64,000 bases of DNA from Bugula neritina (lineage: Eukaryota; Animalia; Bryozoa): the NCBI GenBank assembly GCA_964035545.1, contig OZ037772.1:3811538-3875537 (forward strand). The letters run 5' to 3'. The position numbers were made by a program, and so were the translations under genes. How positions within the stretch are numbered: the stretch's first letter is position 1; each line of letters begins with the position of its first letter. Positions 2,736 to 51,427 of the stretch are shown here, in pieces. The notes below the pieces were generated by a model. The model searched no databases. It was not told the DNA's origin and saw only the letters and a list, made by a program, of their open reading frames with translations.

Positions 2736-4524
<1,789 letters not shown>

Positions 4525-4978: not shown

Positions 4979-5078
<100 letters not shown>

Positions 5079-5287
5079 ATATATATTATATGATATTATA
5101 TATATATAATATATATATAATATAATATATAATATAATGATATATTATATTATTATATTATCTAATATATTATTATAATATATATTATATATAATATTAT
5201 TATACTTATATAATATATATATATATAATATAACAATATATAATATAAAAATATATAATATATTATTATAATATATATATATGTATA

Positions 5288-5363
<76 letters not shown>

Positions 5364-5366
<3 letters not shown>

Positions 5367-5634
5367 AGTGAGGACGTAATACGCGCGTCCCCCGCATTCC
5401 TTCAGCCTATCCAAGTGCGTCACGTGATAGGCCTTAGTTAGTAGTAGTTTTGCAGTAGAGAGAGCGTGCTAACTAAGCGAAGATGTAATCTCTAATCTGT
5501 GTACGAGCTGTATCTTTTATATAATTAGTAGTAAATAAACTTGGAAGCTTTTACCTAAATACTTTATTGGTGTAGATAAATAGACATAATTACAAGCTAG
5601 GAACCCACGCATAGTAGTTACACAAATTACTACA
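5364..5634 (+). repeat. Family A 5' LTR (271 bp)
   Basis: TG...CA with inverted termini TGTAGT/ACTACA. Its first ~57 bp recur at 12669-12725 after the PPT. Confidence 0.9.
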
Positions 5635-5635
5635 G

Positions 5636-5653
5636 TGGTGGCAGCGGTGGGAT
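5636..5653 (+). promoter_or_regulatory. Primer binding site, tRNA-Leu (family A)
   Basis: TGGTGGCAGCGGTGGGAT is the reverse complement of the metazoan tRNA-Leu(AAG/TAG) 3' end ...ATCCCACCGCTGCCACCA. It lies 1 nt after the LTR. Confidence 0.88.
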
Positions 5654-5695
5654 TTCTAGCTACTGTATGAGAACAATGAGAAGTATTAGAACATC

Positions 5696-8600
5696 ATGGA
5701 CGAGGGAGTAACTTCAATGGAAGGAGGTGAGCAGAACATTATTATAGGCCCTCTCGGAGCTGGAGAGGAGGTATATAGGAACATGTTGGAGGTTCCCGTG
5801 TTCACAGGCTGCGAGGATATTGAACAATTCGTTCAAGAATTCCGTGAAACTGCCGCCATTGCAAGATGGCCGCCAAGAGTAACCCTTACAAAACTGCGGA
5901 TGGCACTGACGGGAGAAGCCAAGCCGTACGGGTGGAAGCCTAGCATAAACGGGATCATTGCTACACTACGGGCCCGTTTTGGCATGCCCGTTGCCGTCGC
6001 CAAGTCCAGACTGCGAGGATTACTCCGCAAGACATGTACACCGCTTTCTGACCACGCCACTCTGGTGCAGAGACTGGCACGGACCGCGTATAGCGATCTG
6101 CCAGAAACACACAGACGGCACTACACATTCGAAGCCTTTGTACAGTCTCTCAATTCCTTGGACTTCCACCACCAGTTACAAGCCAAGGGAGTGACCACAA
6201 TTGAGGCTGCAATCCAAGAGAACAAGGCCTACGCTGGAGCCGAACGACTCTATAAGACGGAGGAGGCCACGCCCCAGCCCTCTAGGGAACCAGACCATCC
6301 GGTCCGCATAGCTGCCGCGACCACTAAAACCCCCAGGGAGGCGGAGATAAGCCGCTTGATGACTAGACTGGGAAAATTGGTGGCGACGATAACATACAAC
6401 CACTCAAGGAAGAGTAAGAGGACGGCAGCAAAACCCCCCAGACCCATGATGCGACGCTGGGAAAGCGGCAATCAGGGACACCGCCACCTGAGTGGCCCAC
6501 GGTTCAAACGGCAGCAGAAACCACAACCTCCCCGGAGACCCCCAGAGTTCCGCGGACACACACAGAGAGAAAAACGGGGTGGGTGTCGCCAGGAGCCCGT
6601 ACGGGCCCAGCGACACAACCCCCGTCAATGGCAAACACCTCGCCGTACCAGCCAACCAGGTCGACCACGAGACCCCTTCTCTCTGCCTCTCACCAACCGC
6701 TTCAGTCCGTTACCAGTAATGGAACAGACCAGCGAGGCCCCTCAGGGCATCGGGGAGGATCAGAACACCTCCCCGCAAGGAAACTCTCACCGGCCCCGCA
6801 AACCGCGGAACAAACGGGCACAGCCCCGTTCGGCCGAGACCGAGCACGCTGGGGGAATACGGGTACAACCTCACGGAGGCAGCTACTTCTTGCCAGGGAA
6901 GGTGGCCGGTAAAGCTGTCACCTTCCTGTTAGACTCCGGGTGTACCACTAATATCCTCAGTCGTCGGGTCTTCGACACCCTCCCTCTCAAGGAGAGGGGA
7001 GCCTTAGCTCCCTATACCGGGGAACCGGGCACCCTAGCTGACGGGTCACGGATTCCTTTCTACGGTATCATAGAATTGGCTGGGCGCGTCCGCGACCAAG
7101 CCATTCAGGAAACCTTCGTCATCAGCCCACTGGAGGAAGATGCCATACTAGGGATGCTGTTCTTGAAGAGACACGGGTGCCATATCGACTTTAGCAAGTC
7201 AGCCATGCTAATGGGCGGCAAAGAGCTCACCTGTGTCGACAAGTTCGGTCGTCCTCTAGCGGGAGGTGTGCAGGTAGTACGCAACTGTACTATACCCGGC
7301 CGCTCCCGGGCTACCGTTCACTGCAGAGTGAACAATAGCCAACTCTCGGGGCTAGGGGTTGTCAAAGGTGCGCACTCTAGAATCCAACTCGCCAGCAGTC
7401 TTAACCGGCTGACTGACCGAGGAGAGATCTTGGTGCAGTGTGTCAACCCCTTCTCCGAAGCGGTACAATTACCGTCAGGATCCATGCTGGGTCGCTTCCA
7501 CTCCATCCAGGAGGGGGATGTAGGGCCGTCGCTGGGAGCTGCGACGGAAGGTCCCCAACAGAGCCCGTCAGTTAGGCGGGGGACCGTCCCATCACACGTC
7601 AAAGAGCTATACCAGGCAGCGTGTAACGGCTGCACGGGCAACGTGGAACGCCAGACTATGGCTCAGTTGCTACGTGATTATAGCGACGTGTTCAGCAGTG
7701 GGGACCATGACGTCGGCCTGACCACGGCCGTCCGTCATGAGATACCGCTGGCTGCAGGGACTACCCCTATTCGGCAGCCCACCAGGAGGCTGGGACCCGA
7801 GAAGGAAAAAGAGGTAAGCCAACAAGTCCGGGATCTTTTGGACCGCGGCCTCATCGAACCAGCGCATAGCGCGTGGAGTTCACCGGTCGTTCTGGTCCGA
7901 AAGAAAGACGGCAGTTGGCGGTTCTGTGTGGATTATCGCAAGCTCAATAGCGTGACCATACAGGACGCCTACCCCTTACCCAGGATCGACGAATCTCTGG
8001 ACGCCTTAGCCGGCAGCAAGTACTTCAGTACGCTAGACTTGTTGAGCGGCTATTGGCAGGTCCCCCTCAGCCCAGATGCCCAGGAGAAGGCGGCGTTCAT
8101 CACGCGGGACGGCTTATGGAAGTGGAAAGTCCTCCCCTTCGGACTGACTTCCGCCCCCGCCACGTTCCAGCGGCTCATGGAACAGGTCCTCAGTGGACTC
8201 CACTGGAAGACACTGCTAGTGTACCTCGACGACGTCATCGTGATCTCCCCAGACTTTCAGACGCACGTCAGCCGTCTGCGGGAGGTCTTCGATCGACTCC
8301 GAGGCGCCAATCTGAAGCTCAAACCCTCCAAGTGCGCTCTCTTGCAGCCAGAGGTGAAGTACCTGGGGCACATCGTCGGCCGTCACGGCGTGGCGACGGA
8401 TCCTGAAAAGGTACGAGCTATAGAAGATTGGGTAACCCCCCAGGATTTGACCGGGCTACGGGCTTTCCTGGGGCTGGTAGGGTATTACAGGCAATACATA
8501 CCAGACTTTGCGGGGGTAGCGCAGCCGTTAAACCGGCTCACCGCAAAGGGGGTGACCTGGCAGTGGACTCCCGTCGAACAGAGAGCGTTCGACTGCCTCA

Positions 8601-11155
8601 AAGGCCGCCTGCTGGAGGCCCCTATCCTGGCCTATTCAGACCCTGCCCTGGAGTACATCCTCGATACTGACGCCAGTGACCAAAATGTCGGCGCTGTGCT
8701 GTCCCAGGTGCAGGAGGGCCGCGAAGTAGTCGTGGCCTACTACAGTAAGTCTCTCTCGCCCACTGAACGAAATTACTGCACTACCCGAAAGGAATTGCTG
8801 GCAGTAATCAAGTCGGTGAAGCATTTCAGACCTTATCTATACGGCAGGAAGTTCCGCTTGCGGACCGACCGCGCCTCCTTGATTTGGTTATGTAAGAGAG
8901 CAGAACCGTCCAGCCAAGTCGCCCGATGGCTCGAGGTCCTGGCCGAGTTCTCTTACCGGATCGAACACCGACCCGGTAAGAAACACGGCAATGCTGATGG
9001 ACTGAGCCGGCGACCGGACGAGGGGTGTAAACAGTGCCTCAACATCGAGAAGAGGGACGGAGGTCCTCCAAAATCCGAGTTGAGAGCACTGAACCACTCT
9101 GAAACGGAGTATGACTGGGACCAGGGTCAACTCCTACAGAAGGCCTCTACGCCCCCGGAGGCTATCCAACGCCTCCGTGCCAATCCTGTCTTGGCTGATA
9201 ACGTTAGAGAGCTACGAAGACTCCAGGAGGACCTCCCTGGAGTGGTAGCCGACGTATATCGTGCCAAAAAGGAGGGGCGACGACCCAGTGAAGAACAACT
9301 GCGGCAGGGATGCACCGAGTTACGGTTGTACTGCCAACGTTGGGATTCCCTGCGGATCGGGCCAGATGGTCTGCTGACCATCACAGTGGCTGCTCACAAC
9401 AACCAATACGGCAGACAAAGGGTGATCTGCCCAGCCGCCATACGCCGGGAGTTAGTATGGGACACCCACAAGCAAGCCCACGCCGGGGTGAGCAGGGTTC
9501 TCTCCAAGTTACAACTCCGGTGGTACTGGCCCGGCATGGAGCGTGAGGTGCGGCGTAGAGTCAAACAATGCGAAATCTGCCAGGCCAGCAAGCATGGCCG
9601 TCTCCCTGGTGAAGCGGGACGGCGTCGGCTATATGCTGGAAGGCCATGGCAGATGGTAGCTATCGACCTAGTCGGACCCATGCCCGTCACCCCCAGGGGA
9701 AACAGCTGGATCCTAGTATTAACCGACCACTTTACACGGTGGGCGGATGCCCTGGCTATTCCAGATGCGTCCGCCCCCACGGTGGCCAGGGTGCTGGACC
9801 AAAATGTATTCTGCTATCTTGGACTACCTGAGCAAATACATTCGGACCAGGGGGCTCAATTCCAGTCCCAAATGTTGAGCGACCTCTGCCGCCTCTGGGG
9901 AGTGAACCAAAGCAGGACCACCCCGTACCATCCTCAGGGCAACGGGGTGGTGGAACGCAACAATCGCATGTTGGGCGATGCACTGCGCAGCCTGCTCCTC
10001 GGCCGGGGTCAGGAGGAGTCGGATACGGTACTACCGCAAGTCATGCGGGCCTACCGTAGTACACCACACACCTGTACGGGGGAAACCCCTAACCTCCTGA
10101 TGCTCGGTCGAGAGACACGAGTGCCTGACCACCTCACATACCACATCCCAGAGCAGGACTATACCATCCACGAGTATGCCAGTAAATTGATAGAGGACCT
10201 GAGGGCCGCACACGAAATACTGCGGGCGAAGCAGTGGCAGGTACGGCGAGAGGACTCTCAGGAACCACCCCTCTATCGAACTGGGGACTGGGTGTGGATG
10301 ATCAACTACCGTAGGCGTCGAGGACAAGCGGCTAAGCTCCAGCCTAAGTTTGTGGGACCCTACGTAGTAGTTGAAGCTATGCCCAATCATACGTACAAGT
10401 TGGAGCGATCTGGACAGGTCTCTGTCCAGAACGAAGCCCGCTTGAAACCGTATTGGGCTAGCCCAGGAGCAGCAGGAGCAGCCCCCCCGTTGTTGGAGCC
10501 CAGGAGGCAGACAGTAACGCGTGGGCGGCAACGGCATGGACCAGAATACGAAGTGGTTGTGCCGCGGGGAGAGGACTTAGTGAAGCAGGAGACGCCACTC
10601 CCACCAACGGAAGTGCGCCCACCGCCCCCAGTACCAAGTCTACCCCCACCACTTCCGGTTCCGCATCCGCGTCCGGAAGTGCAAAACCCCCCCGCGGGAG
10701 GGGCTCCATCTGGAGACGACAGCAGAGAGGGGAACACCACCACCAACGGCGGGCCAGAAACACCACAGGTGGAGCAAAATAGCCCACCAGTGAGTACGCC
10801 GCCCCAACCAACAGCTATAACTCCCTCTCCAGCTGATGCGTCACCTCCCCTGGAACGGGGACAGCGTACTAGACAACCCCCAGCATACCTTAAAGACTTC
10901 ATATGTGACCGTGTTACAAACGGCAGTTATGAAAGTCTAGCTGGGCGCCGTACGGAAAGACTGGCAACAAAGCGTGGGAGTTGTGAACACCACGGAAATC
11001 TCAACTTTTGCGAAGGCGGAGTAGTAAACAAAACTACTACGCCCGAGGCAAATAGTTCCAGCCGTGCGCAACAACCACGCTGCCCAGTCTTTTCGTACGC
11101 TGACATTGTCAAGGGAAGACGCATTCAAACTCAATCCACGGACATCCAAGCTTGA
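5696..11155 (+). CDS. Gag-Pol polyprotein (single ORF, 1819 aa): Gag, aspartic protease, RT, RNase H, integrase with GPY/F and Pro-rich tail
   Basis: LLDSGC (PR); FCVDYRKLN, LPFGL, YLDD (RT); DTDAS, ELLAV, NADGLSR (RH); H-x3-H...CEIC, DLVGP, SDQG, VERNNR (IN); KFVGPY. Several conserved residues are substituted relative to family B (TDH->TDR, EEW->EES), so this copy may be defective. Confidence 0.95.
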   Translation: MDEGVTSMEGGEQNIIIGPLGAGEEVYRNMLEVPVFTGCEDIEQFVQEFRETAAIARWPPRVTLTKLRMALTGEAKPYGWKPSINGIIATLRARFGMPVAVAKSRLRGLLRKTCTPLSDHATLVQRLARTAYSDLPETHRRHYTFEAFVQSLNSLDFHHQLQAKGVTTIEAAIQENKAYAGAERLYKTEEATPQPSREPDHPVRIAAATTKTPREAEISRLMTRLGKLVATITYNHSRKSKRTAAKPPRPMMRRWESGNQGHRHLSGPRFKRQQKPQPPRRPPEFRGHTQREKRGGCRQEPVRAQRHNPRQWQTPRRTSQPGRPRDPFSLPLTNRFSPLPVMEQTSEAPQGIGEDQNTSPQGNSHRPRKPRNKRAQPRSAETEHAGGIRVQPHGGSYFLPGKVAGKAVTFLLDSGCTTNILSRRVFDTLPLKERGALAPYTGEPGTLADGSRIPFYGIIELAGRVRDQAIQETFVISPLEEDAILGMLFLKRHGCHIDFSKSAMLMGGKELTCVDKFGRPLAGGVQVVRNCTIPGRSRATVHCRVNNSQLSGLGVVKGAHSRIQLASSLNRLTDRGEILVQCVNPFSEAVQLPSGSMLGRFHSIQEGDVGPSLGAATEGPQQSPSVRRGTVPSHVKELYQAACNGCTGNVERQTMAQLLRDYSDVFSSGDHDVGLTTAVRHEIPLAAGTTPIRQPTRRLGPEKEKEVSQQVRDLLDRGLIEPAHSAWSSPVVLVRKKDGSWRFCVDYRKLNSVTIQDAYPLPRIDESLDALAGSKYFSTLDLLSGYWQVPLSPDAQEKAAFITRDGLWKWKVLPFGLTSAPATFQRLMEQVLSGLHWKTLLVYLDDVIVISPDFQTHVSRLREVFDRLRGANLKLKPSKCALLQPEVKYLGHIVGRHGVATDPEKVRAIEDWVTPQDLTGLRAFLGLVGYYRQYIPDFAGVAQPLNRLTAKGVTWQWTPVEQRAFDCLKGRLLEAPILAYSDPALEYILDTDASDQNVGAVLSQVQEGREVVVAYYSKSLSPTERNYCTTRKELLAVIKSVKHFRPYLYGRKFRLRTDRASLIWLCKRAEPSSQVARWLEVLAEFSYRIEHRPGKKHGNADGLSRRPDEGCKQCLNIEKRDGGPPKSELRALNHSETEYDWDQGQLLQKASTPPEAIQRLRANPVLADNVRELRRLQEDLPGVVADVYRAKKEGRRPSEEQLRQGCTELRLYCQRWDSLRIGPDGLLTITVAAHNNQYGRQRVICPAAIRRELVWDTHKQAHAGVSRVLSKLQLRWYWPGMEREVRRRVKQCEICQASKHGRLPGEAGRRRLYAGRPWQMVAIDLVGPMPVTPRGNSWILVLTDHFTRWADALAIPDASAPTVARVLDQNVFCYLGLPEQIHSDQGAQFQSQMLSDLCRLWGVNQSRTTPYHPQGNGVVERNNRMLGDALRSLLLGRGQEESDTVLPQVMRAYRSTPHTCTGETPNLLMLGRETRVPDHLTYHIPEQDYTIHEYASKLIEDLRAAHEILRAKQWQVRREDSQEPPLYRTGDWVWMINYRRRRGQAAKLQPKFVGPYVVVEAMPNHTYKLERSGQVSVQNEARLKPYWASPGAAGAAPPLLEPRRQTVTRGRQRHGPEYEVVVPRGEDLVKQETPLPPTEVRPPPPVPSLPPPLPVPHPRPEVQNPPAGGAPSGDDSREGNTTTNGGPETPQVEQNSPPVSTPPQPTAITPSPADASPPLERGQRTRQPPAYLKDFICDRVTNGSYESLAGRRTERLATKRGSCEHHGNLNFCEGGVVNKTTTPEANSSSRAQQPRCPVFSYADIVKGRRIQTQSTDIQA

Positions 11156-11220
11156 ACGCTGAGTATGATTACAAATACCGGGTTCTCAGGTAAGCTTGCT
11201 CTGAGCTAACATTTCCACTC

Positions 11221-12309
11221 ATGGAAACCAGTCTACCATCAGTCAGTTCTGATTTAATCGCCTTGATTGAATCACAACTACTGGGGACTGAGTCCTACGT
11301 GAAAGGCGACGAGAACATAAAGATGGCCGACGATCTACTAGATCTGGAGCTTGACACTATGTCTCTCTGTCAGTCTACACGACATGACTCAGTCCCACGA
11401 GTGCTATCTGAAAAGATGTATGACTCTCAGACTAGTAACAGTCGGTTGTCATCAGAATTATGGTGTAAAGATCATATCCGATCTAACAGTAATTCTGCTC
11501 TTTTAGATACCGCTCTCTCTCCTCTATCTGGTGACATGCCGTCACTAGAAATGGCTTGGAACGAGGAACCCGTTCCCACTACTCTTCCGGAGGCACTCCT
11601 ACAACAATCATGCTGGGTTACAACAGATACGGAAACACTGATACGAGAGCACAAAGGAGATGACCAATGCACCACCTGCCGTTTATGCCAGCTTCACTTC
11701 ACTACCCCACGAAGACTCCGAGTTCATATTCCCCAACATTACTTCACCACCTTTTGTCCCTGTGGTGAATATAGTTACCACAGGGACTACATCCTCCGTC
11801 ACCAACGAACCATGGGATGCCATATTGGACACCTATTCGAAGTCGACGAACCCTCCTTTCCACAATTCCTTAATCTCATCCGACCGTTCATATCAGACCC
11901 AGTTCGATATGAACGGCTGCGCCAGGAGTTCCCCGCACCCAGGACCATCACACAAGGACCCTGCCCTAAACCACCCGGATATAGGAAACCCCGCATATCC
12001 CATTCCTCACCCCCCGCACGCACAGTGCCTCGCCCCGACTCTATACCCAGAGTCGTGTTACGACGCATCGATATACCACAGCGATGGCGTCCCTCCCCCC
12101 CTGTCTCCCCAAGGCCGTCTCGTAAGCGGCGTTGGCCATCTTCATCCCCCAATCGACACTCTGCCCCCGCCAGGAATCTAGGCGAGGCAGAAGAGCGGAT
12201 ACGAGAATTAGAGAAAGAGGTGCAAAGACTGACACCGAGAATCTCCGCCGCCGCATCAGAACTCCGGGCCCTCTCTGCCTCTGTAGCCCGAATGAAAGGA
12301 AGTGCTTGA
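11221..12309 (+). CDS. Family A 3' accessory ORF (362 aa): acidic N-terminus, C2H2 + C2HC zinc fingers, basic motif, C-terminal coiled coil
   Basis: CRLC-x12-H-IPQ-H, then CPC-x12-H-x5-C, then RPSRKRR, then heptad helix LGEAEERIRELEKEVQRL. Lies between the pol stop and the PPT. Homologous ORFs occur in both family B copies. Confidence 0.85.
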   Translation: METSLPSVSSDLIALIESQLLGTESYVKGDENIKMADDLLDLELDTMSLCQSTRHDSVPRVLSEKMYDSQTSNSRLSSELWCKDHIRSNSNSALLDTALSPLSGDMPSLEMAWNEEPVPTTLPEALLQQSCWVTTDTETLIREHKGDDQCTTCRLCQLHFTTPRRLRVHIPQHYFTTFCPCGEYSYHRDYILRHQRTMGCHIGHLFEVDEPSFPQFLNLIRPFISDPVRYERLRQEFPAPRTITQGPCPKPPGYRKPRISHSSPPARTVPRPDSIPRVVLRRIDIPQRWRPSPPVSPRPSRKRRWPSSSPNRHSAPARNLGEAEERIRELEKEVQRLTPRISAAASELRALSASVARMKGSA

Positions 12310-12726
12310 AGGTGATGTCCCTCCTTTCCTATCCGTGATGGTACAGCAGGTGGTGCCCCATTACAGACTCTTCTCACGCTAGTGCTCACAGACAATTACT
12401 CAGTGTAACAATATAGTAACCTACCAGTATACAGCTCTACCTCTACAAACTATTCCCTTATAGTGCCTCCCGCCGGTGCCATTGTACATTTATTGTTATA
12501 TTTTTTTTCATGTATGTATATGTTTCTTACTACTGTACATAGCCATGTTTTTTCTTTGTGTGCCACACGCTCTCTCAGTTTTTATATATATATAGTTTTA
12601 TAACATTTTATGTTTGAATTATCTAATCTGTGTTATCAGAAAGTAGGGCTTTCTGCTGGAGGGGGCAGTGTAGTGAGGACGTAATACGCGCGTCCCCCGC
12701 ATTCCTTCAGCCTATATAAGTGCGTG

Positions 12727-12784
<58 letters not shown>

Positions 12785-13135
12785 ATATATATATATATTT
12801 ATATATATGAATATATAATATTATTATATATATATATAATATATAATATTATTATATGTATATATATATATATTATATATAATATCATTATATATATATA
12901 ATGTATATAATTTAATATATAATATAATAATATATTATATATGATATTATTATATATATAATATATAATATAATAATATATTTTATATATTATATATGAT
13001 ATTATTATATATATAATATATATATATAATATTAGTATATAATATTATTATACTTATATAATATATATATATAATATAACAATATATAATATAAAAATAT
13101 ATAATATATTATTATAATATATATATATGTATATA

Positions 13136-13189
<54 letters not shown>

Positions 13190-14070: not shown

Positions 14071-14149
<79 letters not shown>

Positions 14150-14490
14150 TTATATATATATAATATATAATATTATTATATGTATATATATATATATATA
14201 TATTATATATAATATTATTATATATATAATATAATATATAATATAATAATATATTATATATATAATATATGATATATTAATGTATAATATATTATTATAA
14301 TATATATATATATATCATATATGTTGTGTTGTTTGACTCGCTATTATTCACCGCGAGACTCGTTGAGCTCGGGGATTTTCCTACTAGCTAGAATTGAAAT
14401 AAATCACGATAATTATCAGCTTAGACTCAATCCAACTTTGTTGTACTCTTACGCACCAATCACACATGGTGGCAGCAGTTAAAACTAATA

Positions 14491-14680
14491 ATGGGCAATG
14501 AAGAAGTTCAGCAACAAATAATTGTGCATAGGAATGCACCCAGAATCGAACCACCAGGTGAGATCGTTTTGAATTGTGAGCATGAGCAAAACTTCAGAAG
14601 ATTTAAAAGCCGGTGGCAGTCGTTTTACATTCTGTCTAGACTTTCGGAGGAAAGTGATGAGTACCAGAGAGCATTGCTAT
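14491..14680 (+). pseudogene. Family C gag 5' part, cut by the B1 insertion
   Basis: MGNEE...YQRALL. Removing B1 and one copy of the CTAT TSD joins it in frame to 22066 (...ALLLYTIGDDACRVVE...), giving a 1350-aa Gag-Pol. Confidence 0.9.
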
Positions 14681-15018
14681 TGTGGTGGCTCGTGGAGCTA
14701 CCAGCAGCACAATACGCGAGGTTGCGTATTGACCCAGAACAATGTATTAGCCAATTAGCCAAGCTGTATTATTAGTAATAGTAGCTGCTTCGCGCTACTA
14801 GCTCAGTTGAGGATAGTGCTGTAAACTAAATAGACGTGCGTATCATTACTGTTGTACATTGGATTTTTATTATGTATTCTTGTATTAAATATAACGATAT
14901 CTACTCGACTTAACTGGTGAAGTTTCTCTAGTGTTAAATAGACTCTCTTGGTGGCACATCAACCCTAAATCTGAAAACTATAACAGTGGTGGCAGCGGTG
15001 GGATAGTGTATATCAAAG

Positions 15019-15885
15019 ATGGAGACTGAAAATGCTAGAATGCAACCACCCCCAGTAGAAGGTGAGCGTAGAAATGCTGTTAATCCTGTGAATCGTGAAG
15101 AAGAAGAAGCTTATAGACATTACTTGAAAGCTCCCACCTTTACTGGGTCGGAAGATGTCGAACAATTTATACAAGAATTTAGAGAGGTAATGGAAGTTGC
15201 TCAATGGCCGCATAGAGTGGCCCTTATCCAATTGCGGAGGGCGGTGACGGAGCAAGCCAAGCCGTACGGAGTGGGAACGGACGTAGACGGCATACTGGCT
15301 GCGCTGCGGGCCCGTTTTGGCACCTCCGTCATAGACGCTAGGACCAAGCTGGAGAGATTGTGCCGCACCCCGCGGACCTCGCTGCAAGAACATGCCGCGA
15401 CGGTGAAGAAGCTGGCGCAGATTGCGTATAGCGATCTGCCAGCACAACACCAAGAGCGTTACACCTATGACGCCTTTGTCCAGTCCCTAAACGACCTGGG
15501 CCTAGACCATCACCTACGAGCTAAAGGGATAACCAGAATAGAGGATGCCCTGAAGGCTGGAGAAGCTTACCTGTTGGCTACCCAAATGCATCGAGCACAA
15601 AGGAACCCCCCAGTAGTTGGAGTCAGCGCTGCCAGGGCTACGACAGGCTCCGAAGCCCTCCCGCTGGAAGCCGAAGTGGACCGCATGGTAGAGATGCTGG
15701 GACAATTGGTAACCATTCTGGCCGGTGCTGGCCCTGGTCAGGCCTTGCGGATGCCCCCAACATCTGTGGGGCAGGGCTGGAGTAGCGCTGATCAGGACCA
15801 GGGACAGAAAGGACGACCCCAATACCAGGGGGCGTTAAACTGTCACGGCCCGCGGACACACTCCCTCCCCGCGGGCCGCAACTAA
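15019..15885 (+). CDS. Family B Gag (288 aa)
   Basis: Starts just after the PBS. Homologous to the family A N-terminus (PTFTGSEDVEQFIQEFRE, LRARFG, AYSDLP, AFVQSLN). Confidence 0.9.
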   Translation: METENARMQPPPVEGERRNAVNPVNREEEEAYRHYLKAPTFTGSEDVEQFIQEFREVMEVAQWPHRVALIQLRRAVTEQAKPYGVGTDVDGILAALRARFGTSVIDARTKLERLCRTPRTSLQEHAATVKKLAQIAYSDLPAQHQERYTYDAFVQSLNDLGLDHHLRAKGITRIEDALKAGEAYLLATQMHRAQRNPPVVGVSAARATTGSEALPLEAEVDRMVEMLGQLVTILAGAGPGQALRMPPTSVGQGWSSADQDQGQKGRPQYQGALNCHGPRTHSLPAGRN

Positions 15886-15891
15886 AGGAGT
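15834..15891 (+). promoter_or_regulatory. Putative -1 programmed ribosomal frameshift signal (GUUAAAC + H-type pseudoknot)
   Basis: G_TTA_AAC in the gag frame, 6-nt spacer, stem GGCCCGCGG (15847-15855)/CCGCGGGCC (15869-15877), and loop ACTCC pairing with GGAGT (15887-15891). The -1 frame is open and homologous to family A. Identical in B2. Confidence 0.75.
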
Positions 15892-16153
15892 ATGGTGGAA
15901 CGCGCCGTTGTCTGTCCGTACGGACACGGCGGAACATTCCACCCGAGTGGCAGGTACCACGCAGGACTAGTAGGCCCGCACAACGGCCCAGTACCTTCTC
16001 CCTGCCACTCGCTAACCGGTTTCACCGGTTACCTCGGGAAGAGGAGCCCGCCACTGAAATGGAGCCAGAAGGCCCAGTGGAGAGGCCCAAACCCCGCCGG
16101 CACCAATCTCGCCGCCGGAAGCCCCGTAAACCACGGGTGAAACCCCCGCCGTC

Positions 16154-19100
16154 TTGTCAAACCAGGACAGCACATGCGGGGGGGGGGTGAAAGTACAACC
16201 ACATGGAGAGAGCTATTTCCTACCCGGAAAGGTGGCCGGCAATGCCGTCACTTTCCTGCTCGACTCCGGTTGTACTACCAACCTTCTCAGTCGTAGAGTC
16301 TTTGAGGCACTGCCCCGCCGGGACAGGGATAGAGTACGACCGTATACTGGAGAACATGGCACCCTGGCAGACGGGTCATGTATCCCCTTTTATGGTATTA
16401 TCGAGCTCCCTGGGCGTGTCCGAGATCAGGCTGTACAGGAGACCTTTATCATAGGTCAACTGGAAGAAGATGCTATCCTCGGAATGCCCTTCTTGAAGCA
16501 GCACCAGTGCCGAATAGATTTCAGTAAGTCGGTGGTGCTGATGGGCGGGCGAGAACTCGCCTGTGTGGATAAGTTTGGGCGTCCCCTGGTGGGCGGTGTT
16601 CAGGTAGTTCGGAACTGCACCGTACCCGGACGCTCCAGAGCTACTATCCACTGCCGAGTGAACAGCAACCGGATAGCCAGGCTCGGGGTCGTTGAAAGCG
16701 CGCACGAAAAGATCCAACTCGCCAGTAGTTTAAACCGACTAACTGAGCGAGGGGAGGTCTTAGTGCAGTGCGTCAACCCCTTTACCGAGCCCATTGAGCT
16801 CCCAGCTGGGTCAATGCTGGGCCGATTCCATTCCGTCCAGGAAGAGGACGTGGGCCCGTCGCCGGGTGACGCGACGGAGGCACCCCCTCGACACCCTATT
16901 CAGGGACGAGGGGCAGTCCCAACACATCTCCGGGAGTTATACGAAACAGCCAGTGGCGGCTGCGCGAGTAACAGAGAACGCCAAGCTATGGCCAAGTTAC
17001 TACGCGACTACGGTGATGTGTTCAGCAGCGGAGAGAATGACGTGGGACTGACTGGAATTGTCAGACAGGAAATACCGCTGACTGCAGGGACAGTCCCTGT
17101 CCGGCAGCCCACGCGCAGGCTGGGGCCGGAGAAAGAGAAGGAGGTTAGCCGACAAGTACGGGATCTTCTGGACCGGGGACTGATAGAGCCCGCCCATAGT
17201 GCGTGGAGCTCGCCAGTCGTACTGGTCCGGAAGAAAGACGGCAGTTGGCGGTTCTGTGTGGACTACCGCAAACTCAATAGCGTAACCATACAGGACGCCT
17301 ACCCTCTACCTCGTATTGACGAGTCATTGGACGCCCTAGCCGGCAGCAAGTACTTCAGTACGTTAGACTTGCTAAGCGGCTATTGGCAGGTTCCTCTGAG
17401 TCCCGACGCCCAAGAGAAAGCGGCGTTTATCACACGGGACGGTTTGTGGAAGTGGAAGGTGCTGCCCTTCGGGTTAACCTCCGCCCCAGCCACCTTCCAG
17501 AGGCTGATGGAACAAGTCCTTAGCGGACTCCATTGGAAGACACTGCTGGTCTACCTCGATGATGTCATCGTAATCTCTCCAGACTTCGAGACACATGTCA
17601 GTCGTCTGCAGGAGGTTTTCGAGAGACTCCGAGGTGCCGGTCTTAAGCTCAAACCTTCCAAGTGCGCTCTGTTGCAGCCGGAGGTCAAGTACCTGGGGCA
17701 CGTTGTCGGTCGGAACGGCGTGGCAACGGATCCCGAAAAGGTACGGGCAGTAGAAGACTGGGTCACCCCTCAAGACTTGACCGGACTCCGGGCTTTCTTG
17801 GGGCTGGTAGGGTATTACAGGCAATACATACCAGACTTTGCGGGCATAGCCCAGCCGTTGAACCGGCTCACCGCAAAGGGAGTGACGTGGCAGTGGACTC
17901 CAGTCGAACAAGAAGCGTTCGACCGCCTCAAGGGCTGCCTCCTAACGGCGCCCATCTTGGCCTACCCAGACCCCACTCTGGAGTACATCCTAGACACGGA
18001 CGCCAGTGACCAGAATGTTGGCGCTGTGCTGTCACAAGTGCAGGAAGGCCGAGAAGTAGTAGTAGCCTACTACAGCAAGTCTCTCTCTCCCGCTGAACGA
18101 AATTACTGCACTACCCGCAAGGAGCTGCTGGCAGTAATCAAGTCAGTGAAGCACTTCAGACCATACCTATATGGCAGGAAGTTCCGGCTGCGTACGGATC
18201 ATGCCTCGCTGATCTGGTTGTGCAGGAGAGCAGAGCCCTCTAGTCAGGTCGCCCGGTGGCTCGAAATCCTAGCTGAATTCTCGTACCGGATCGAACACCG
18301 ACCGGGCAAGAGACACAGCAATGCGGATGGGTTGAGTCGCCGACCTGACGGAGGTTGCAAACAGTGTCTCAACATCGAGAGGAGGGATGGAGGTCCCCCA
18401 CGATACGAGTTGGAGACGCTGGCTCATCACGGAGCACCGTTTGACTGGGATCAAGGTCAACTCAGGCAAAGAGTTGATGAGTCCCCGGAGGATGTACAAA
18501 ACCTCCGCGCCAACCCTGTACTGGCCGGTAATGTTCGAGAGCTGAAGAAGCTCCAAGAAGAGCTGCCTGGAGTCGTGGCAGACATCTACCGGGCCAAAAG
18601 GGAAGGGCGACGACCCAGCGAGGAACGCATACGACAGGGATGCGCCGAGTTCCGGCTATACTGTCAGCGTTGGGACTCGCTGCGGATCGGGCAGGATGGG
18701 TTGCTAACCATCTCTCTAGCTGCCAGCGGCAGACACCCGGAAAGGAAGAGGGTAGTCTGCCCCACAGCCATCCGCCGTGAGTTGATTTGGGATACTCACA
18801 AGCAGGCCCACGCAGGGGTCAAGCGAGTGATATCCAAATTACGACTCCGGTGGTATTGGCCGCAGATGGAGCGTGACGTCCGGCTCAGAGTCAAACAGTG
18901 TGAGATCTGCCAGGCCAGTAAGCATAGCCGCCCCCCTGGTGAAGCAGGACGGCGGAGGCTATATGCTGGTAGGCCCTGGCAAGTAGTCGCTGTAGACCTG
19001 GTCGGACCCATGCCCCTGACCCCCAGAGGCAATAATTGGATCCTAATACTAACCGACCACTTTACTAGGTGGGCGGATGCTCTGGCTATCCCAGATGCAT

Positions 19101-20461
19101 CAGCCCCAACGGTGGCCAGGGCACTAGACCAACATGTATTCTGTTATTTTGGGCTTCCCGAACAGATACACTCTGATCAAGGCGCTCAATTCCAGTCTCA
19201 ACTGATGAGCGACCTTTGCCACCTCTGGGGAGTAAATCAGAGCAGGACCACCCCCTACCACCCTCAAGGTAACGGGGTGGTGGAGCGCAACAACCGGATG
19301 CTAGGTGATGCGCTCCGGAGTCTCCTCCTTGGACGGGGTCAAGAGGAATGGGATACGGTGTTGCCGCAAGTCATGCGTGCATACCGTAGCACCCCACACA
19401 CCAGTACTGGTGAGACCCCAAACCTCTTGATGCTCGGGAGAGAGACTCGTGTCCCTGACCATCTCACCTATCACGTTCCAGAGCAGGATAACTCAGTCCA
19501 CGAGTATGTCAGTGAACTAGTGGAACGGATGAAGGCCGCACACGAGATACTGCGTCAACAGCAGTGGAAGGTGCGGCACGAAGATTCCGATGAACCACCC
19601 CTCTATCAAAGAGGAGATAAGGTGTGGATGGTCAATTACCGTAGGCGCCGCGGACAGGCTGATAAGCTGAAGCCTAAGTTCGTAGGCCCCTACGTGGTCG
19701 TCGAGGCTATGCCCAATCATACGTACAAGATTGAGCGCTCAGGACAGGTGTCTATCCAGAATGAGTCTCGCTTGAAACCGTATTGGGCTAGCCCTGACGG
19801 AGTGGGAGAAGCCCCCCCGTTGTTAGAGCCCAGGAGGCAGAGAACGACGCGCGGGCGACGGCGGCATGGACCTGAATACGAAGTGGTCATACCGCGGGAG
19901 GAAAACTTGGTGAGAGAGGAGCGGCAGCTTTTGTCAACAGAAGCGTGTCCGCCACCGCCAAGTCTAATTCCATCACTTCCAGAAACCGAGCCGGTTCCGG
20001 AAGTGCAAACCCCCACGGAGGGAGGGGCTCCATCCGGAGAACAAGAAGAGGTGACCACTAACGGTGAAGTAGAGACGCCATTTGAGGCCCCTACTAACGA
20101 ACCGGCAAGCGTGTCACCCCCCCTAGAAAGGGGACAGCGTACGAGGAAACCCCCACCGTATTTGAAAGACTTCATATGTGACTGCATTAGAAGCAGCGCA
20201 TATGAAAGTCTAGGGGAAAACCGTACGATAAAATGTTGGAGTTGTGAACCCCACGCAAATATCAACTTTTGCGAGGGCGGAATAGTGGGAGGAATTAATG
20301 CGCGTAAAGCAAATAGTTCCGACCTCGTGCCTCAGAAACGATGCTCAGCCTTTTCTTATGCTGACATCGCCAAAGGCAGACGTATCCCACTACCAGCTCC
20401 AACCTTACCAAGAACGTTGAGTATGGACATTAATACCGAGTTCCCAGGTAAGCCAGTATAA
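16154..20461 (+). CDS. Family B Pol (PR-RT-RH-IN); the true reading begins at the frameshift near 15840 but is broken by a G10 run at 16178-16187
   Basis: Same motifs as family A, intact TDH/YLDD/DDE. B2 has G8 at the equivalent site and reads AHAGGVKVQPHG in frame. Confidence 0.93.
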   Translation: MSNQDSTCGGGVKVQPHGESYFLPGKVAGNAVTFLLDSGCTTNLLSRRVFEALPRRDRDRVRPYTGEHGTLADGSCIPFYGIIELPGRVRDQAVQETFIIGQLEEDAILGMPFLKQHQCRIDFSKSVVLMGGRELACVDKFGRPLVGGVQVVRNCTVPGRSRATIHCRVNSNRIARLGVVESAHEKIQLASSLNRLTERGEVLVQCVNPFTEPIELPAGSMLGRFHSVQEEDVGPSPGDATEAPPRHPIQGRGAVPTHLRELYETASGGCASNRERQAMAKLLRDYGDVFSSGENDVGLTGIVRQEIPLTAGTVPVRQPTRRLGPEKEKEVSRQVRDLLDRGLIEPAHSAWSSPVVLVRKKDGSWRFCVDYRKLNSVTIQDAYPLPRIDESLDALAGSKYFSTLDLLSGYWQVPLSPDAQEKAAFITRDGLWKWKVLPFGLTSAPATFQRLMEQVLSGLHWKTLLVYLDDVIVISPDFETHVSRLQEVFERLRGAGLKLKPSKCALLQPEVKYLGHVVGRNGVATDPEKVRAVEDWVTPQDLTGLRAFLGLVGYYRQYIPDFAGIAQPLNRLTAKGVTWQWTPVEQEAFDRLKGCLLTAPILAYPDPTLEYILDTDASDQNVGAVLSQVQEGREVVVAYYSKSLSPAERNYCTTRKELLAVIKSVKHFRPYLYGRKFRLRTDHASLIWLCRRAEPSSQVARWLEILAEFSYRIEHRPGKRHSNADGLSRRPDGGCKQCLNIERRDGGPPRYELETLAHHGAPFDWDQGQLRQRVDESPEDVQNLRANPVLAGNVRELKKLQEELPGVVADIYRAKREGRRPSEERIRQGCAEFRLYCQRWDSLRIGQDGLLTISLAASGRHPERKRVVCPTAIRRELIWDTHKQAHAGVKRVISKLRLRWYWPQMERDVRLRVKQCEICQASKHSRPPGEAGRRRLYAGRPWQVVAVDLVGPMPLTPRGNNWILILTDHFTRWADALAIPDASAPTVARALDQHVFCYFGLPEQIHSDQGAQFQSQLMSDLCHLWGVNQSRTTPYHPQGNGVVERNNRMLGDALRSLLLGRGQEEWDTVLPQVMRAYRSTPHTSTGETPNLLMLGRETRVPDHLTYHVPEQDNSVHEYVSELVERMKAAHEILRQQQWKVRHEDSDEPPLYQRGDKVWMVNYRRRRGQADKLKPKFVGPYVVVEAMPNHTYKIERSGQVSIQNESRLKPYWASPDGVGEAPPLLEPRRQRTTRGRRRHGPEYEVVIPREENLVREERQLLSTEACPPPPSLIPSLPETEPVPEVQTPTEGGAPSGEQEEVTTNGEVETPFEAPTNEPASVSPPLERGQRTRKPPPYLKDFICDCIRSSAYESLGENRTIKCWSCEPHANINFCEGGIVGGINARKANSSDLVPQKRCSAFSYADIAKGRRIPLPAPTLPRTLSMDINTEFPGKPV

Positions 20462-20478
20462 GTCTTGTATTCCTATTC

Positions 20479-21491
20479 ATGGAAACGGGCTCGATGCCAG
20501 TAAATTCTGAACTAATTCAACAGATTGAATCAGAATTACTGGGAACCACGTTTCATGTGAATGACGATGAAGACACTGTAATGGCCGACGGTCTGTTAGA
20601 CCTGGAGCTAGACACTGTTCTTGGTCAGTCCACACATGATTCATCAGTTCCTCGAGTGCATTCCAAAAGCTGTGACTCTCAGGCTAGCAACGGTCGACAG
20701 TCACTAGAATTATGTTGTAAAGATCCACCGCGATCTAACAATAATTCTACTTTTGTAGACACACTCGCACCCGTCTCTACGGACATGCCTTCTCTAGAGA
20801 TGGCATGGGACCCAGAGCCGGCCCCAACAACTCCTACCACCAGGCAACTACCACCCCAGTTGGAAGCAACCTCCAACTGGATTACCCCTGCCAGCAGCGA
20901 TTCACAACCCACCGCAGACTAAAGGTGCACTTGCCGCAGCACTACATCACCACTTTCTGCCCTTGCGGAGAATATAGCTATAATCGTGATTACCTACTGC
21001 GGCACCAACGTACTATGCAGTGCTATCAAGGACATGTCTATGAAGTAGACGAATCATCATATCCTGCCTTTCTCAACGCCATCAAACCACTCATCACTGA
21101 CTCAGCTCGGCTATCTCGCCTGGAGCAAGGCTTCCCTTCCCCGCGACCTATCATCTCTGGAGCCACAGATAAACCTACACAGTCTGCTAACTCTCCACCT
21201 CACAGTCCTATACGCATGCCGCATACCTTTCCTCGTGTCGTACTACAGAGAGTAGACACAAATGCGTATACACTCCCTCCTCCTCTTCCATCCTCAGAGC
21301 GGAAACGACACAGGCAGCCAACTTCCTCTCGCTCGTCCCCCTGGGCCCGTAACCTACGTGAGGTAGAAGCTAGGGCGCATGACTTGGAGCAAGAAGTGTA
21401 CAGGCTGGCCCCACGGGTACAGGCAGCCTCCAGTGAACTCAAATATTTACAGGAGTCTATTAAACGCATGAAGCGTGCGGCCCGCAGTTAA
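20479..21491 (+). pseudogene. B1 zinc-finger accessory ORF, frameshifted by a 61-bp deletion
   Basis: Collinear with the intact 1074-nt B2 ORF except for 61 nt lost between two CTGCCA repeats at ~20888-20893. This splits it into ORFs 20479-20922 and 20805-21491. Confidence 0.9.
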
Positions 21492-22065
21492 CTCGAGTCT
21501 ATCTACAACTCCCTACTACTCATTCCCCTACCTCTCTGTGGCATTCCCTACCGTAATGGTGGCACGTACTCTATATGTAGATAGGACCTTCTCTTGCTTA
21601 TTACTTAGTGCACGTTATATACCTGTATATTTTTTACCAGTTGTTGTTTTTTTTTATATACTTTTATACTGTTCTCTTACCCCCCACAACGAAGTATACG
21701 TTTTTTTATGTGAATCTTATTTTATCAGAAAGTGGGCTTTCTGCTGGAGGGGGCAGTGTGGTGGCTCGTGGAGCTACCAGCAGCACAATACGCGAGGTTG
21801 CGTATTGACCCGGAACAATGTATTAGCCAATTAGCCAAGCTGTATTATTAGTAATAGTAGCCGCTTCGCGCTACTAGCTCAGTTGAGGATAGTGCTGTAA
21901 ACTAAATAGACGTGCGTATCATTACTGTTGTACATTGGATTTTTATTATGTATTCTTGTATTAAATATAACGATATCTACTCGACTTAACTGGTGAAGTT
22001 TCTCTAGTGTTAAATAGACTCTTTTGGTGGCACATCAACCCTAAATCTGAAAACTATAACACTAT

Positions 22066-25000
22066 TATATACAATTGGTGATGATGCATGCCGAGTGGTA
22101 GAGTCAAGTCACAAATATCAGAATGATAAGAGTCTAGCAGCGATAATAGACATTTTGGAGCAATACTGTGTAGGAGAACGAAATATAGTGCACGAACGTT
22201 ATAAATTTAATACAAGGTGTCAATTACAAGGAGAGAATTTTGATGCTTTTTACTCAGAATTACGTACGCTAGCAGATAAATGTGGATTTAATTACCGACC
22301 TGCCACTGGTGAGGCACCAGCACCATTTGATGAGATGCTGAGAGATCGAATTGTTCTAGGAATTAGAGATGACTCTCTTAGAAAGAAATTGATTTCTCAA
22401 GGTAACACTTTAACACTAGACCAGGCAGTACGTATTTGTAGGAGCAGTGAAGTCACTTCAACTGTGATGCAAAGTGTAACAAAAGGAGCAAGCTCAGGGT
22501 CTGTAGATGCTATAAGTAAAGCACAAAGCAGCTACCCTAAATATAAGCAAAGCAAACCAAGTCATACACGCAAGCAGGGAGGTGCTGTCCAGCTGCCAGT
22601 TAACTCTCAGATGTACAAGCCTACAAACAGCCAGGATCATTGTAAAAGGTGCGGTAAGGAACCACATTCAAAAGCGGAATGCCCAGCTAAGGATGCTCAA
22701 TGCAGGAAGTGCAAGAAAGTGGGCCACTTCCAGCGGCAATGCAGAAGTACATCCATCCAGGAGGTGACCGAAGCAAGTAGTGACGATGGTATAATGTTCA
22801 CAGGAGAGTTCAAAATAGAAAACCTAACTGTGGATGCTTGGAAAGCCGAAGTAGCAGTAAATGGTAACTGTACTACTTTCAAGCTCGATACAGGTGCAGA
22901 TGGTACAGTAGTCAGTGACAAACTACCGTGGCTGTCTACTATTTCACTGCAAACTACAGGAGTCCGCTTATATGGACCTGGAGGAAAGCAACTCCAAGTC
23001 TTAGGAACTTTTGAGGCAGATCTTCAATATAAAAGTCAAAAGTACAAGGAGACAGCCTACGTAATTCAAAATCAGTCAACCTCTCTACTCAGTAGAACTG
23101 CTTGTGAAAAGTTAGGACTGATAACATGCCAAGTAAAGCAGCAAGGGGAAATAACCAAAGACATCCACACAGGCTTCTCAAAGCTATTTAAAGGCCTTGG
23201 AGCACTCAAGGGATACTCATACAGAATATCACTAATTCCAGATTACCAGCCAACATGCATCTACACTCCAAGGAAAATTCCCATTCCATTACGAGACAAA
23301 ACTAAGAAAAAGCTAGATGAGATGGCGCAACAAGGAGTTATCTCTCCCGTAACAGAAGCTACAGAGTGGTGTAGTGGAATGGTCCCAGTCCTCAAACCAT
23401 CAGGAGATGTACGCGTCTGTGTGGACCTGACTGGCCTGAATAAAGCAGTTAGAAGGAAAATCTATCCAATGCCAGCAGTCGATGAAAGTATTGGACTGTT
23501 GGGGGCAAGTAAAATCTTCTCAAAGCTGGATGCCAATAGTGGGTTCTGGCAAATACACTTGGACAAGGAGTCAAGAAAACTGACTACCTTCCTCACACCT
23601 TTTGGCCGGTTCTGTTTCAACAGACTTCCATTTGGCATATCTAGTGCACCGGAGATCTTTTCTCGAGCTATGTGCAGACTACTAGGCGACATAGAGAATG
23701 TCATCTGCCACATGGACGATATTCTAGTTCATGGTAAAGATGCAGAAAGCCATGATAAAACCTTAAAGCTGGTTTTAAGCAGACTGGAAGAAGCAGGACT
23801 CACATTGAATGAAGACAAGTGTGAGATTGGCCAAGCTCAAGTGAAGTTTTTAGGCCACATTATAGATGCTAAAGGAGTCAGCCCTGACCCGGATAAAGTC
23901 GCATCAATACGTGACTTTCCAGCCCCTACCTGTAAGACAGAGTTGAGACGACTAAATGGTATGCTGAATCAGCTAGCTAAGTTTATCCCTCACCTGTCTG
24001 AAATCACAGCTCCCATGAGAGAGTTACTGAAGGAAAGTAAGGCTTGGACATGGAATCAACCTCAAGAGGAAGCTTTCCAAAAGGTAAAGCAAACACTGAT
24101 GTCTGCTCAGGTCATAGCACACTATGATCCCAAGCTGAAAACAATTGTTGCCACTGATGCTAGCAACACTGGACTTGGAGCTGCTATGTTCCAAATACAA
24201 AAGGACGGGACAAGGAGGCCAGTATACTATGCATCAAGGTCTTTAACCTCAGTGGAACAAAATTACGCCGCAATAGAAAAGGAGGCATTGGCAATGGCTT
24301 GGGCATGCAACAAGCTTGATCAGTTTTTAAGAGGATTACCTTTCACTCTAGAGACGGATCACAAGCCTTTGGTTAGGCTTATGGGTGTAAAAGACTTAGA
24401 CCAAGTGCCAGCCAGGATTCTTCGATTGAGACTGCGGCTCATGAGGTATGCTCCAAAAATAGAGTATATCCCAGGGTCTCGCAACCACGTAGCAGATGCA
24501 TTGTCGCGAGCACCCTCTGGTATACCATCTCGCATAGATGTGATGCTGGTCGAAGAGCTAGAAGCTAGCACTTCCATCATACCTTTGATAGATCCGATGG
24601 TCGAAGAGATCAAGGAGGCACAGCAACTAGATGCCGTGTGCCAAGAGGTCCAGAATCTCATTATAAAAGGATGGCCTACATATAAAACAGATGCCCACAC
24701 AGCAGTACACCCTTACTGGGATGTCAAAGGACATTTGACACAATCTAAAGGCCTTCTCTTATATGATCAGCGGCTAGTCATCCCTAGCAACTTAAGACTA
24801 AAACTGCTTGACCGCATTCACCAGGCCCATCAAGGAATAGTAAAATGCCAGGCAAGAGCCAGAAGAGCTATCTGGTGGCCGGGAATGTCTAAACAAATAA
24901 AAGAAATGGTACAGGGGTGTCGACAGTGCAGAATTAACTCACCGACCCCGGTGGAGCCTCTGCAGCCATCCACCTTGCCATCTAAACCCTGGATAAAGTT

Positions 25001-25928
25001 AGGTGCAGACCTGTTCGAGTTCCAGAAAAAGAACTATCGGTTAGTGGTCGATTATCATAGCAGATACATAGAAGTTAGGAGATTAGACTCACTGTCGTCA
25101 GCATTCACTGTGGACAAAGTTAAATCCATCTTCTCAACTCATGGAATTCCCGAGGTAGTCATTTCTGACAATGGACCTCAGTTCAGCTCTAGGGAGTTCC
25201 AAGAATTTGCCAAAAGTTATGGTTTTCAACATGTGACCAGCTCTCCGAAATATCCAAAAGCCAATGGCGAAGCTGAGAGAGCGGTAGGAACAGTAAAGCG
25301 TCTGTGGAGCAAAACTACAGATCCATACCTAAGCCTATTAACCTATAGAGCTACCCCACTCGAAAACGGATTCACTCCTTCAGAACTTTTGATGAACAGG
25401 CTATTTCGAACTACTCTACCCTCCATGCCTGAAACCCGAGTGGTTCACAAGCCACCAAACATTGCTGAGAAGGAACAACACATAAATCTAAGGACCATGA
25501 ATAACTACAACCAACGGCACAAAGCCACTCTGTTGCCTGAACTTTCTCAAGGTTCACCCGTCTATGTCAGAGACACTAAGAAACAGGGCACAGTTCTGGC
25601 AAGTGTAGCTCCACACTCATACACGGTTAAAACTGAAACAGGAGTTATACGCCGAAACCGAAGTGCGTTGGTAGATCTTCGGGAAGAGGACCCCGTGGTG
25701 CTTGAACCAAATGCTCCTCCGCCGGTTCCTATGGGTGCAGAGGTGCTTGGTCCAAAAGCTAACAAAAAAGCCAATCCATCAGGAACGCAGGCACCCGGAA
25801 CATTGGTCGCAGAGGGCTCGGGTACGTCTTTAGCCCATACAGCCAGTCCAACGGTTCCGGGTAGGTTTTGTGCTCTATCCAGAGAGCGAAGATTGCCCCG
25901 GAGATTTGATGACTATGTGATGAATTAA
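22066..25928 (+). CDS. Family C Gag-Pol remainder: two Cys/His knuckles, PR, RT, RNase H, integrase
   Basis: LRDRIVLGI, CKRCGKEPH..CPA..CRKCKKVGHF..C, LDTGAD, VCVDLTGLN, LPFGI, HMDD, TDAS, ETDHKPL, H-x3-H..CRQC, SDNGPQF, EAERAV. Confidence 0.93.
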
Positions 25929-26916: not shown

Positions 26917-26982
<66 letters not shown>

Positions 26983-51410: not shown

Positions 51411-51427
51411 GAATAGGAATACAAGAC

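Follow-up and report, generated by a model that had tools for sequence, protein, structure and literature searches.

Extra genes in LTR retrotransposons are usually dismissed as env remnants. In the window analysed here, a 64-kb stretch of the Bugula neritina genome, two families of Ty3/Gypsy elements carry an additional open reading frame (ORF3) between pol and the polypurine tract, which raises the question of whether this is such a remnant and, if not, what it does. Our preferred answer, which we put forward tentatively, is that ORF3 serves a bryozoan Ty3/Gypsy lineage as a functional accessory gene, most likely by activating transcription from the element's own LTR.

The window is AT-rich (GC of about 0.15-0.35), with GC-rich islands (about 0.58) that correspond to LTR retroelements. 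Element A (5364..12725, forward strand, as are all its features) comprises a complete 5′ LTR with TG...CA ends (5364..5634), an internal region, and about 57 nt of the 3′ LTR (12669-12725). The 22-mer that starts the LTR occurs at 5364 and 12669 only, and the match of the 3′ LTR to the 5′ LTR stops after 57 nt, at an AT-rich block. The 18-nt primer-binding site (5636-5653) is identical to that of the second family, B, and is followed by a single 1819-aa gag-pol ORF (5696..11155) in which Pfam places protease, reverse transcriptase (RT), RNase H, and integrase in the order of Ty3/Gypsy (Metaviridae) elements. A polypurine tract lies at 12658-12668. Family B is represented by B1 (14681..22061, forward strand), which has 305-bp LTRs that are 99% identical and a CTAT target duplication, and by B2 (49767..57207, reverse strand), which has LTRs that are 100% identical and a GTAT duplication. 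The end features of Ty3/Gypsy elements are thus present (TG...CA LTRs, primer-binding site, polypurine tract, and 4-bp duplications), with the duplications read for B1 and B2 only; that of A is unreadable, as most of its 3′ LTR is missing. B1 carries one frameshifting deletion relative to B2 in its pol region (15886..20461, forward strand) and one in ORF3, and B2 carries two relative to B1 in its pol region (51428..56056, reverse strand), while its ORF3 is unbroken. Neither B copy has a break in Gag, and the genes of A have no frameshifting deletion at all.

B1 is nested in the gag region of element C (14322..26247, forward strand), an unrelated Ty3/Gypsy element whose Gag contains a CCHC knuckle, whose 145-bp LTRs are 100% identical, and which has no ORF3. 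The primer-binding site of C (14467-14478) shares its first 11-12 nt with those of A and B (14987-15004 in B), and all three elements probably use the same primer tRNA; a tRNA scan of the 64-kb window found no tRNA gene that would name it. The (TA)n-rich AT blocks at 3621-5362, 12713-14321, and 26248-27408 align with each other at 80-90% in both orientations, direct and inverted. They are the insertion sites of A and C, and one of them borders the end of the 3′ LTR of A.

ORF3 of A (11221-12309, forward strand) is an intact frame of 362 aa that starts with ATG, and ORF3 of B2 (50337-51410, reverse strand) is an intact frame of 357 aa. The B1 copy (20479-21491, forward strand) is 98% identical to that of B2 and is broken by its one frameshifting deletion. 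All three copies lie 3′ of pol and 5′ of the polypurine tract and 3′ LTR, at a distance from pol of 65 nt in A versus 17 nt in B. A preliminary description of this locus had reported such an ORF in three copies, in two families with unrelated LTRs and diverged Gag. This was borne out for the position, the families, and the copies in A and B2, whereas the B1 copy can no longer be counted as an open frame. A and B have their primer-binding site and polypurine-tract regions in common, while their LTRs cannot be aligned and show no likeness beyond chance. Between A and B, the ORF3 proteins are 53-56% identical, compared with about 80% for pol and about 41% for Gag.

The coding sequence of ORF3 is under purifying selection. 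Because synonymous sites between A and B are saturated, the NG86 dS of ORF3 cannot be computed, and we therefore used the proportions of differing sites together with frame controls. These give a pN of 0.305 and a pS of 0.772, a pN/pS of 0.40 overall, with 0.33 in the protein core and 0.55 in the linker, while the same nucleotides read in the two shifted frames give 0.97 and 1.34. Since the shifted frames lack a coding signature, it is the ORF3 frame itself that is constrained. For comparison, dN/dS between A and B is 0.11 for pol (dS 1.15) and 0.31 for gag. A long alternative-frame ORF (11660-12181, forward strand) and an antisense ORF (11799-12395, reverse strand) overlap ORF3 of A; we read both as by-products of GC-rich DNA, because the controls find no coding constraint in the other forward frames. 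Conservation is also uneven along the protein. Among 13 full-length members (53-71% identity), 88 columns are invariant, including 25 of the 52 in the finger segment, and mean pairwise identity is highest in the fingers (0.81), followed by the N-terminal helix (0.74), the linker (0.55), and the segment immediately before the fingers (0.48). The four ligands of finger 1 (C153, C156, H169, and H173) are invariant in 29 relatives; over 63 relatives C156 still never varies, and conservation of the other three is 90% or more. The same holds for three ligands of finger 2. Two claims of the preliminary description, purifying selection and a conservation peak in the fingers, thus hold, with a pN/pS of about 0.4 between A and B in the ORF3 frame.

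What does this conserved frame encode? The N-terminal region (11221..11370 in A; coordinates in this paragraph are on the forward strand) is acidic, with a net charge of -9 in A and a range of -9 to -12 over the first 50 residues. Residues 7-21 of the A protein form an amphipathic helix, and residues 35-44 fit a class-1a nuclear-export pattern in A and B and fit an acidic activation motif equally well. A globular core (residues 115-240; 11563..11940) contains two zinc sites and flanking helices. The zinc sites are formed by two fingers (residues 150-201; 11668..11823), the first of C2H2 type (C153/C156/H169/H173, spaced C-x2-C-x12-H-x3-H, with its hydrophobic core residues present) and the second of C-x-C...H...C type (C179/C181/H194/C200, spaced C-x-C-x12-H-x5-C). 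The linker that follows (11941..12156) is basic, proline-rich (18 K+R, 2 D+E, 18 P), and predicted to be disordered; it contains an RKRR patch at residues 301-304, and its net charge is about +16 in A and about +8 in B2. The protein ends in a heptad helix (residues 313-362; 12157..12306), a coiled coil in which 92-100% of the a and d positions of residues 315-361 are hydrophobic. An AlphaFold2 model of the full-length protein, built with 75 sequences, is mostly disordered with three ordered parts, namely the helix at residues 7-21, the core at 115-240 (pLDDT >90), and a single long helix at 315-361. A separate model of the core by itself, built with 63 diverse relatives, has a pLDDT of 94.7 and a pTM of 0.84. 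The motifs that had been listed for this ORF are therefore all present, as is the transcription-factor-like build that had been claimed for it (acidic N-terminus, C2H2-type finger, basic patch, and coiled coil), and structure prediction adds a confident 125-residue core with two zinc sites and a long C-terminal helix.

The same data dispose of the possibility that ORF3 is an env gene. A membrane segment would need a Kyte-Doolittle mean over 19 residues of about 1.6, whereas the maximum reaches only 0.93 in A and 0.56 in B2, so the protein has no stretch of transmembrane grade, and we found no signal peptide or membrane anchor. No likeness to fusion proteins emerged from searches of Pfam and of PDB sequences or from fold searches of PDB and viral models. 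We therefore reject ORF3 as Env, in agreement with the preliminary description; with the Env of Errantivirus and other retroelements it has only the genomic position in common.

Database matches relate the zinc domain to known proteins over finger 1 only. No Pfam family scored above its cut-off in ORF3 and 63 relatives. The best Pfam C2H2 match to ORF3 was 14.7 bits against a curated cut-off of 25.2, and sub-threshold C2H2 matches were seen in 17 of the 63 relatives; finger 1 itself has the C-x2-4-C-x12-H-x3-5-H pattern and hydrophobic core of PF00096-type fingers. A single relative, from Watersipora, matched the ZAD domain (zf-AD, PF07776) at 17.7 bits, below the cut-off of 28, and we do not assign ORF3 to that family. 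Against PDB sequences, the single ORF3 protein gave nothing below an E of 0.09, while the family profile matched DNA-binding finger arrays over finger 1 at E = 3e-8. Neither the full model nor the core had a Foldseek match in PDB at E ≤ 0.001, and the full model had none among viral models at this level either. The best matches of the core (E ≥ 0.4, TM ≤ 0.35) were all DNA-bound C2H2 arrays, and the full model came closest to a dsRNA-binding finger protein, none of these matches being significant. ORF3 thus resembles classical C2H2 arrays of the ZBTB, SALL, and Zif268 type in the full pattern and profile match of finger 1. However, it has just one classical finger, its second finger begins with C-x-C and has a variable fourth ligand, and the two are separated by five residues rather than the seven of classical arrays. 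They also lie within one compact 125-residue domain with extra helices that has no PDB counterpart. The short spacing and the C-x-C second finger suggest that the fingers may work as one fold and not as separate DNA-reading modules.

Relatives of ORF3 are numerous. A first search returned 74, including a match in a metagenome record that is 100% identical to the C-terminal part of the A protein and a metagenome contig in which the relative follows RT and integrase genes. A profile search of 1.84 billion cluster representatives, run with no length filter, yielded 292 clusters at E ≤ 0.001, of which 115 reach E ≤ 1e-10. The distant relatives have the core in common and often the terminal helix, with a variable N-terminus. 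Most are unnamed, and those with names are all bryozoan: three B. neritina proteins and three Watersipora subatra proteins, the latter being two isoforms of one gene and one further protein. Second and third word-indexed protein searches, made with alignments of distant relatives, were swamped or almost empty and supplied a single Watersipora name. In bryozoan genome annotations, members of the family are called hypothetical or uncharacterized proteins.

Some of these relatives have no pol nearby. Two adjacent Bugula relatives are genes of several exons that show no pol similarity within 10 kb and lack flanking LTR-like repeats. A Watersipora subatra gene model, likewise without pol, joins two tandem intronless ORF3-like units whose core identity to A is 37% and 32%. 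At this locus (L005), the ORFs at 19907-20935 and 22053-22988 lie between direct repeats of about 0.8 kb (16912-17718 and 31794-32978) that are 15.2 kb apart, an arrangement that could be a non-autonomous element or a local duplication. Relatives of ORF3 thus do not always sit 3′ of a Gypsy pol: the one in the metagenome contig follows RT and integrase genes, the intron-containing bryozoan copies have no pol nearby, and the ORF3 domain is not confined to transposons. In a rough neighbour-joining tree the Bugula genes fall far from the A/B clade, at 25-27% core identity, which argues that ORF3 is not a recent capture of those genes; more generally, the search turned up no recently captured host exon, the genomic relatives being 25-37% identical in the core. 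Additionally, a metagenomic ORF (P0202 and P0216, 1145-1208 aa) encodes a Gypsy-type protease 39% identical to that of A and, about 750 residues after it, an ORF3-like core 35% identical to that of A, with no RT detected between the two. Because this ORF combines protease and core, the association with transposons reaches beyond the A/B family.

How ORF3 would be expressed is suggested by two short conserved sites. A 14-mer (11182..11195, forward strand), which contains an acceptor-like YYCAG|G and a strong donor-like CAG|GTAAGC when read against consensus, precedes the ORF3 ATG by exactly 31 nt in A and B alike, while the sequence flanking it on both sides has diverged. The pyrimidine tract of the acceptor-like site is weak. 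A donor-like 9-mer identified by consensus scan near the gag ATG (5724..5732, forward strand) is the only strong one 3′ of that ATG in the 1.6 kb scanned from the start of the 5′ LTR; its GT follows the gag ATG by 31 nt in A, and that of its counterpart by 43 nt in B. ORF3 may be translated from a subgenomic mRNA in which splicing joins the gag-proximal donor to the acceptor-like site upstream of its ATG. In such an mRNA, counting nucleotides puts the gag AUG in a different frame from ORF3, and a stop just after the acceptor-like site closes the ORF3 frame, so that ORF3 needs its own ATG. Alternatively, ORF3 could be translated by reinitiation after the pol stop.

Small nuclear regulators made from a subgenomic message are known from complex retroviruses, in the form of foamy-virus Tas, deltaretrovirus Tax and Rex, and lentivirus Tat and Rev. 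The logic proposed for ORF3 is the same, although no viral model matches its fold at E ≤ 0.001. Among animal retrotransposons, the Ty3/Gypsy element Cer1 of C. elegans encodes in the same position a nuclear regulator, CERV, that has been characterised and is not an env (PMC10309623). CERV is a 517-aa protein from five exons, the first three in the gag frame, that is made from a spliced mRNA; it has candidate nuclear-localisation and export signals and a leucine-zipper-like helix and is found in one animal group only (PMC10309623). At the level of sequence patterns, ORF3 resembles CERV in its candidate localisation and export signals and its zipper-like helix, and its named relatives likewise belong to a single animal group, but it has its own ATG and two zinc sites, whereas CERV is without a recognised nucleic-acid-binding motif.

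The reading that we prefer, though at less than even odds, is that ORF3 encodes a soluble protein of nuclear type that would bind nucleic acid through its two-zinc-site domain, pair through its C-terminal coiled coil, and use its acidic N-terminus to activate transcription at the LTR, thereby serving the element's own expression. The RKRR patch suggests a nuclear location. In the heptad helix, beta-branched residues (Ile/Val) predominate at the a positions and Leu/Ala at the d positions, which, by the GCN4 rule linking a/d residues to coiled-coil dimers that was reportedly set out by Harbury et al. in 1993, points to a dimer. We infer that the ligand is DNA rather than RNA and that the output is activation. 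Support for a regulator comes from the profile match of finger 1 to DNA-binding arrays, the charge layout, the basic patch, and the heptads; from the upstream 14-mer and the gag-proximal donor, which are kept in A and B despite diverged surroundings; and from the precedent of CERV, a nuclear regulator in the same position (PMC10309623). Several findings count against an activator. The domain as a whole matches no DNA-binding domain of known function, the Pfam C2H2 scores are below threshold, the spacing and type of the fingers may make them a single fold, the LTRs of A and B contain no common motif above chance, the acceptor-like site has a weak pyrimidine tract, and the acidic N-terminal motif could equally be a nuclear-export signal. 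Transactivation, anti-silencing, and integration targeting had all been proposed for this gene, and sequence alone does not decide among them. A more specific proposal, that ORF3 is the first zinc-finger, sequence-specific regulator of a Metaviridae-type element and belongs to a large bryozoan-restricted family that moved between retrotransposons and the genome, seems to us doubtful.

A search for a response element common to the LTRs of A and B found that shared 8- to 10-mers are no commoner than in shuffled sequences. One CpG-containing 8-mer is present near the 5′ end of both LTRs (A, 5378-5385; B, 14711-14718) and sits in a short inverted repeat in each. With shared k-mers not above the shuffled controls, this 8-mer is only a lead for a common binding site.

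Of the other functions that ORF3 could have, RNA handling of the kind performed by CERV and Rev survives best, though we consider it rather unlikely. Here the zinc domain and basic linker would bind unspliced RNA, the coiled coil would multimerise, and the leucine-rich acidic N-terminal motif would export the genomic RNA to the cytoplasm. The export pattern at residues 35-44 is present in A and B and lies inside a conserved block, and the basic patch and oligomerisation helix would suit this role. If the ORF3 mRNA is spliced, the element also has splice sites and would face the retention problem that CERV solves (PMC10309623). The top fold match of the full model, to a dsRNA-binding finger protein, is in line with this function but is non-significant. 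Some C2H2 fingers do bind RNA. However, matches to the export pattern are frequent by chance, and no homologue of CERV or of viral regulators could be recognised among the search matches, most of which are unnamed. CERV also has no recognised RNA-binding motif (PMC10309623), which leaves the logic alone in common.

We find it quite unlikely that ORF3 acts as a nucleic-acid chaperone or packaging partner of Gag, joining the particle through its coiled coil like a LINE ORF1 and providing the zinc fingers and basic region that the Gag of this lineage lacks. The Gag proteins of A and B have no CCHC knuckle and only 3 Cys in their first 400 residues, while the neighbouring element C has a knuckle and no ORF3, and the linker of A, at about +16, has the charge for such a role. 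This contrast of A and B with C is nevertheless a single one, and several Gypsy clades without a knuckle have no extra gene either. The acidic conserved N-terminus and the classical C2H2 finger are atypical of chaperones, and the intron-containing relatives with no pol nearby point to a role that is independent of the particle.

Still less likely is a function directed at host DNA or proteins and not at the element, with ORF3 as a chromatin tether, an integration-targeting factor, or an antagonist of host silencing. All four elements of the window lie in or beside (TA)n-rich AT blocks, and a dimerising zinc domain could read AT-rich DNA; kinship to genomic gene copies could also allow mimicry. 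But element C, which has no ORF3, is located in the same blocks, so this location does not require ORF3, and no interaction domain of a known type was detected. Finally, ORF3 could be a passenger, either cellular sequence that was captured and does nothing for the element or a frame left open by chance in GC-rich DNA. This might be suggested by its distant genomic relatives and by a GC3 of 0.47 that is below that of pol (0.59-0.63) and nearer that of the genomic copies (0.34-0.49), but is very improbable given a frame that has stayed intact across a divergence that saturates synonymous sites, coding constraint in that frame alone, dozens of diverged members with invariant zinc ligands, and a fixed spacing to the upstream 14-mer.

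How new is this gene? We found no paper on this ORF or on any bryozoan Gypsy accessory gene. The broad claim that no accessory protein of this kind had been characterised in metazoan Gypsy elements goes too far, given CERV (PMC10309623) and the many types of non-env ORF3 that lie downstream of pol in LTR elements of bdelloid rotifers (PMC5408684). The rotifer ORF3s include esterases/lipases, exonucleases, transmembrane proteins, true fusion proteins, and a coiled-coil type (PMC5408684); they resemble the bryozoan gene in being lineage-specific, in including a coiled-coil type, and in occurring both in elements and in other genomic contexts (PMC5408684). A zinc-finger type of ORF3 is reported neither in PMC10309623 nor in PMC5408684. 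A narrower claim of novelty stands, as the protein family and its zinc domain match no Pfam family, solved structure, or viral model beyond finger 1. The kind of gene is thus known, both as non-env regulators and as captured ORF3s, while the protein family and its zinc domain are undescribed.

The gene offers several opportunities. To our knowledge, CERV is the only extra gene of a metazoan LTR retrotransposon with a known role. ORF3 provides a second example that is structurally tractable, with a confidently modelled new zinc domain and dozens of natural variants. Its relatives in bryozoan genomes could reveal how regulatory proteins are exchanged between elements and their hosts; if the proposed movement between retrotransposons and the genome is real, some bryozoan cellular genes are domesticated ORF3s, or ORF3 is a captured cellular regulator. 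Work on ORF3 also adds annotation to a family that now goes without it in bryozoan genomes.

The window contains additional repeats. A 261-nt direct repeat, 95% identical between its copies, flanks B2 (47053-47313 and 58986-59246) and could represent the two LTRs of another element into which B2 inserted. Tandem arrays are present at 29777-31000, 33018-33343, 41170-41481, and 42162-43001, with periods of 17, 30, 13, and 24 nt, respectively, and a 254-aa ORF at 42257-43021, inside the 24-nt array, is probably an artefact of that array.
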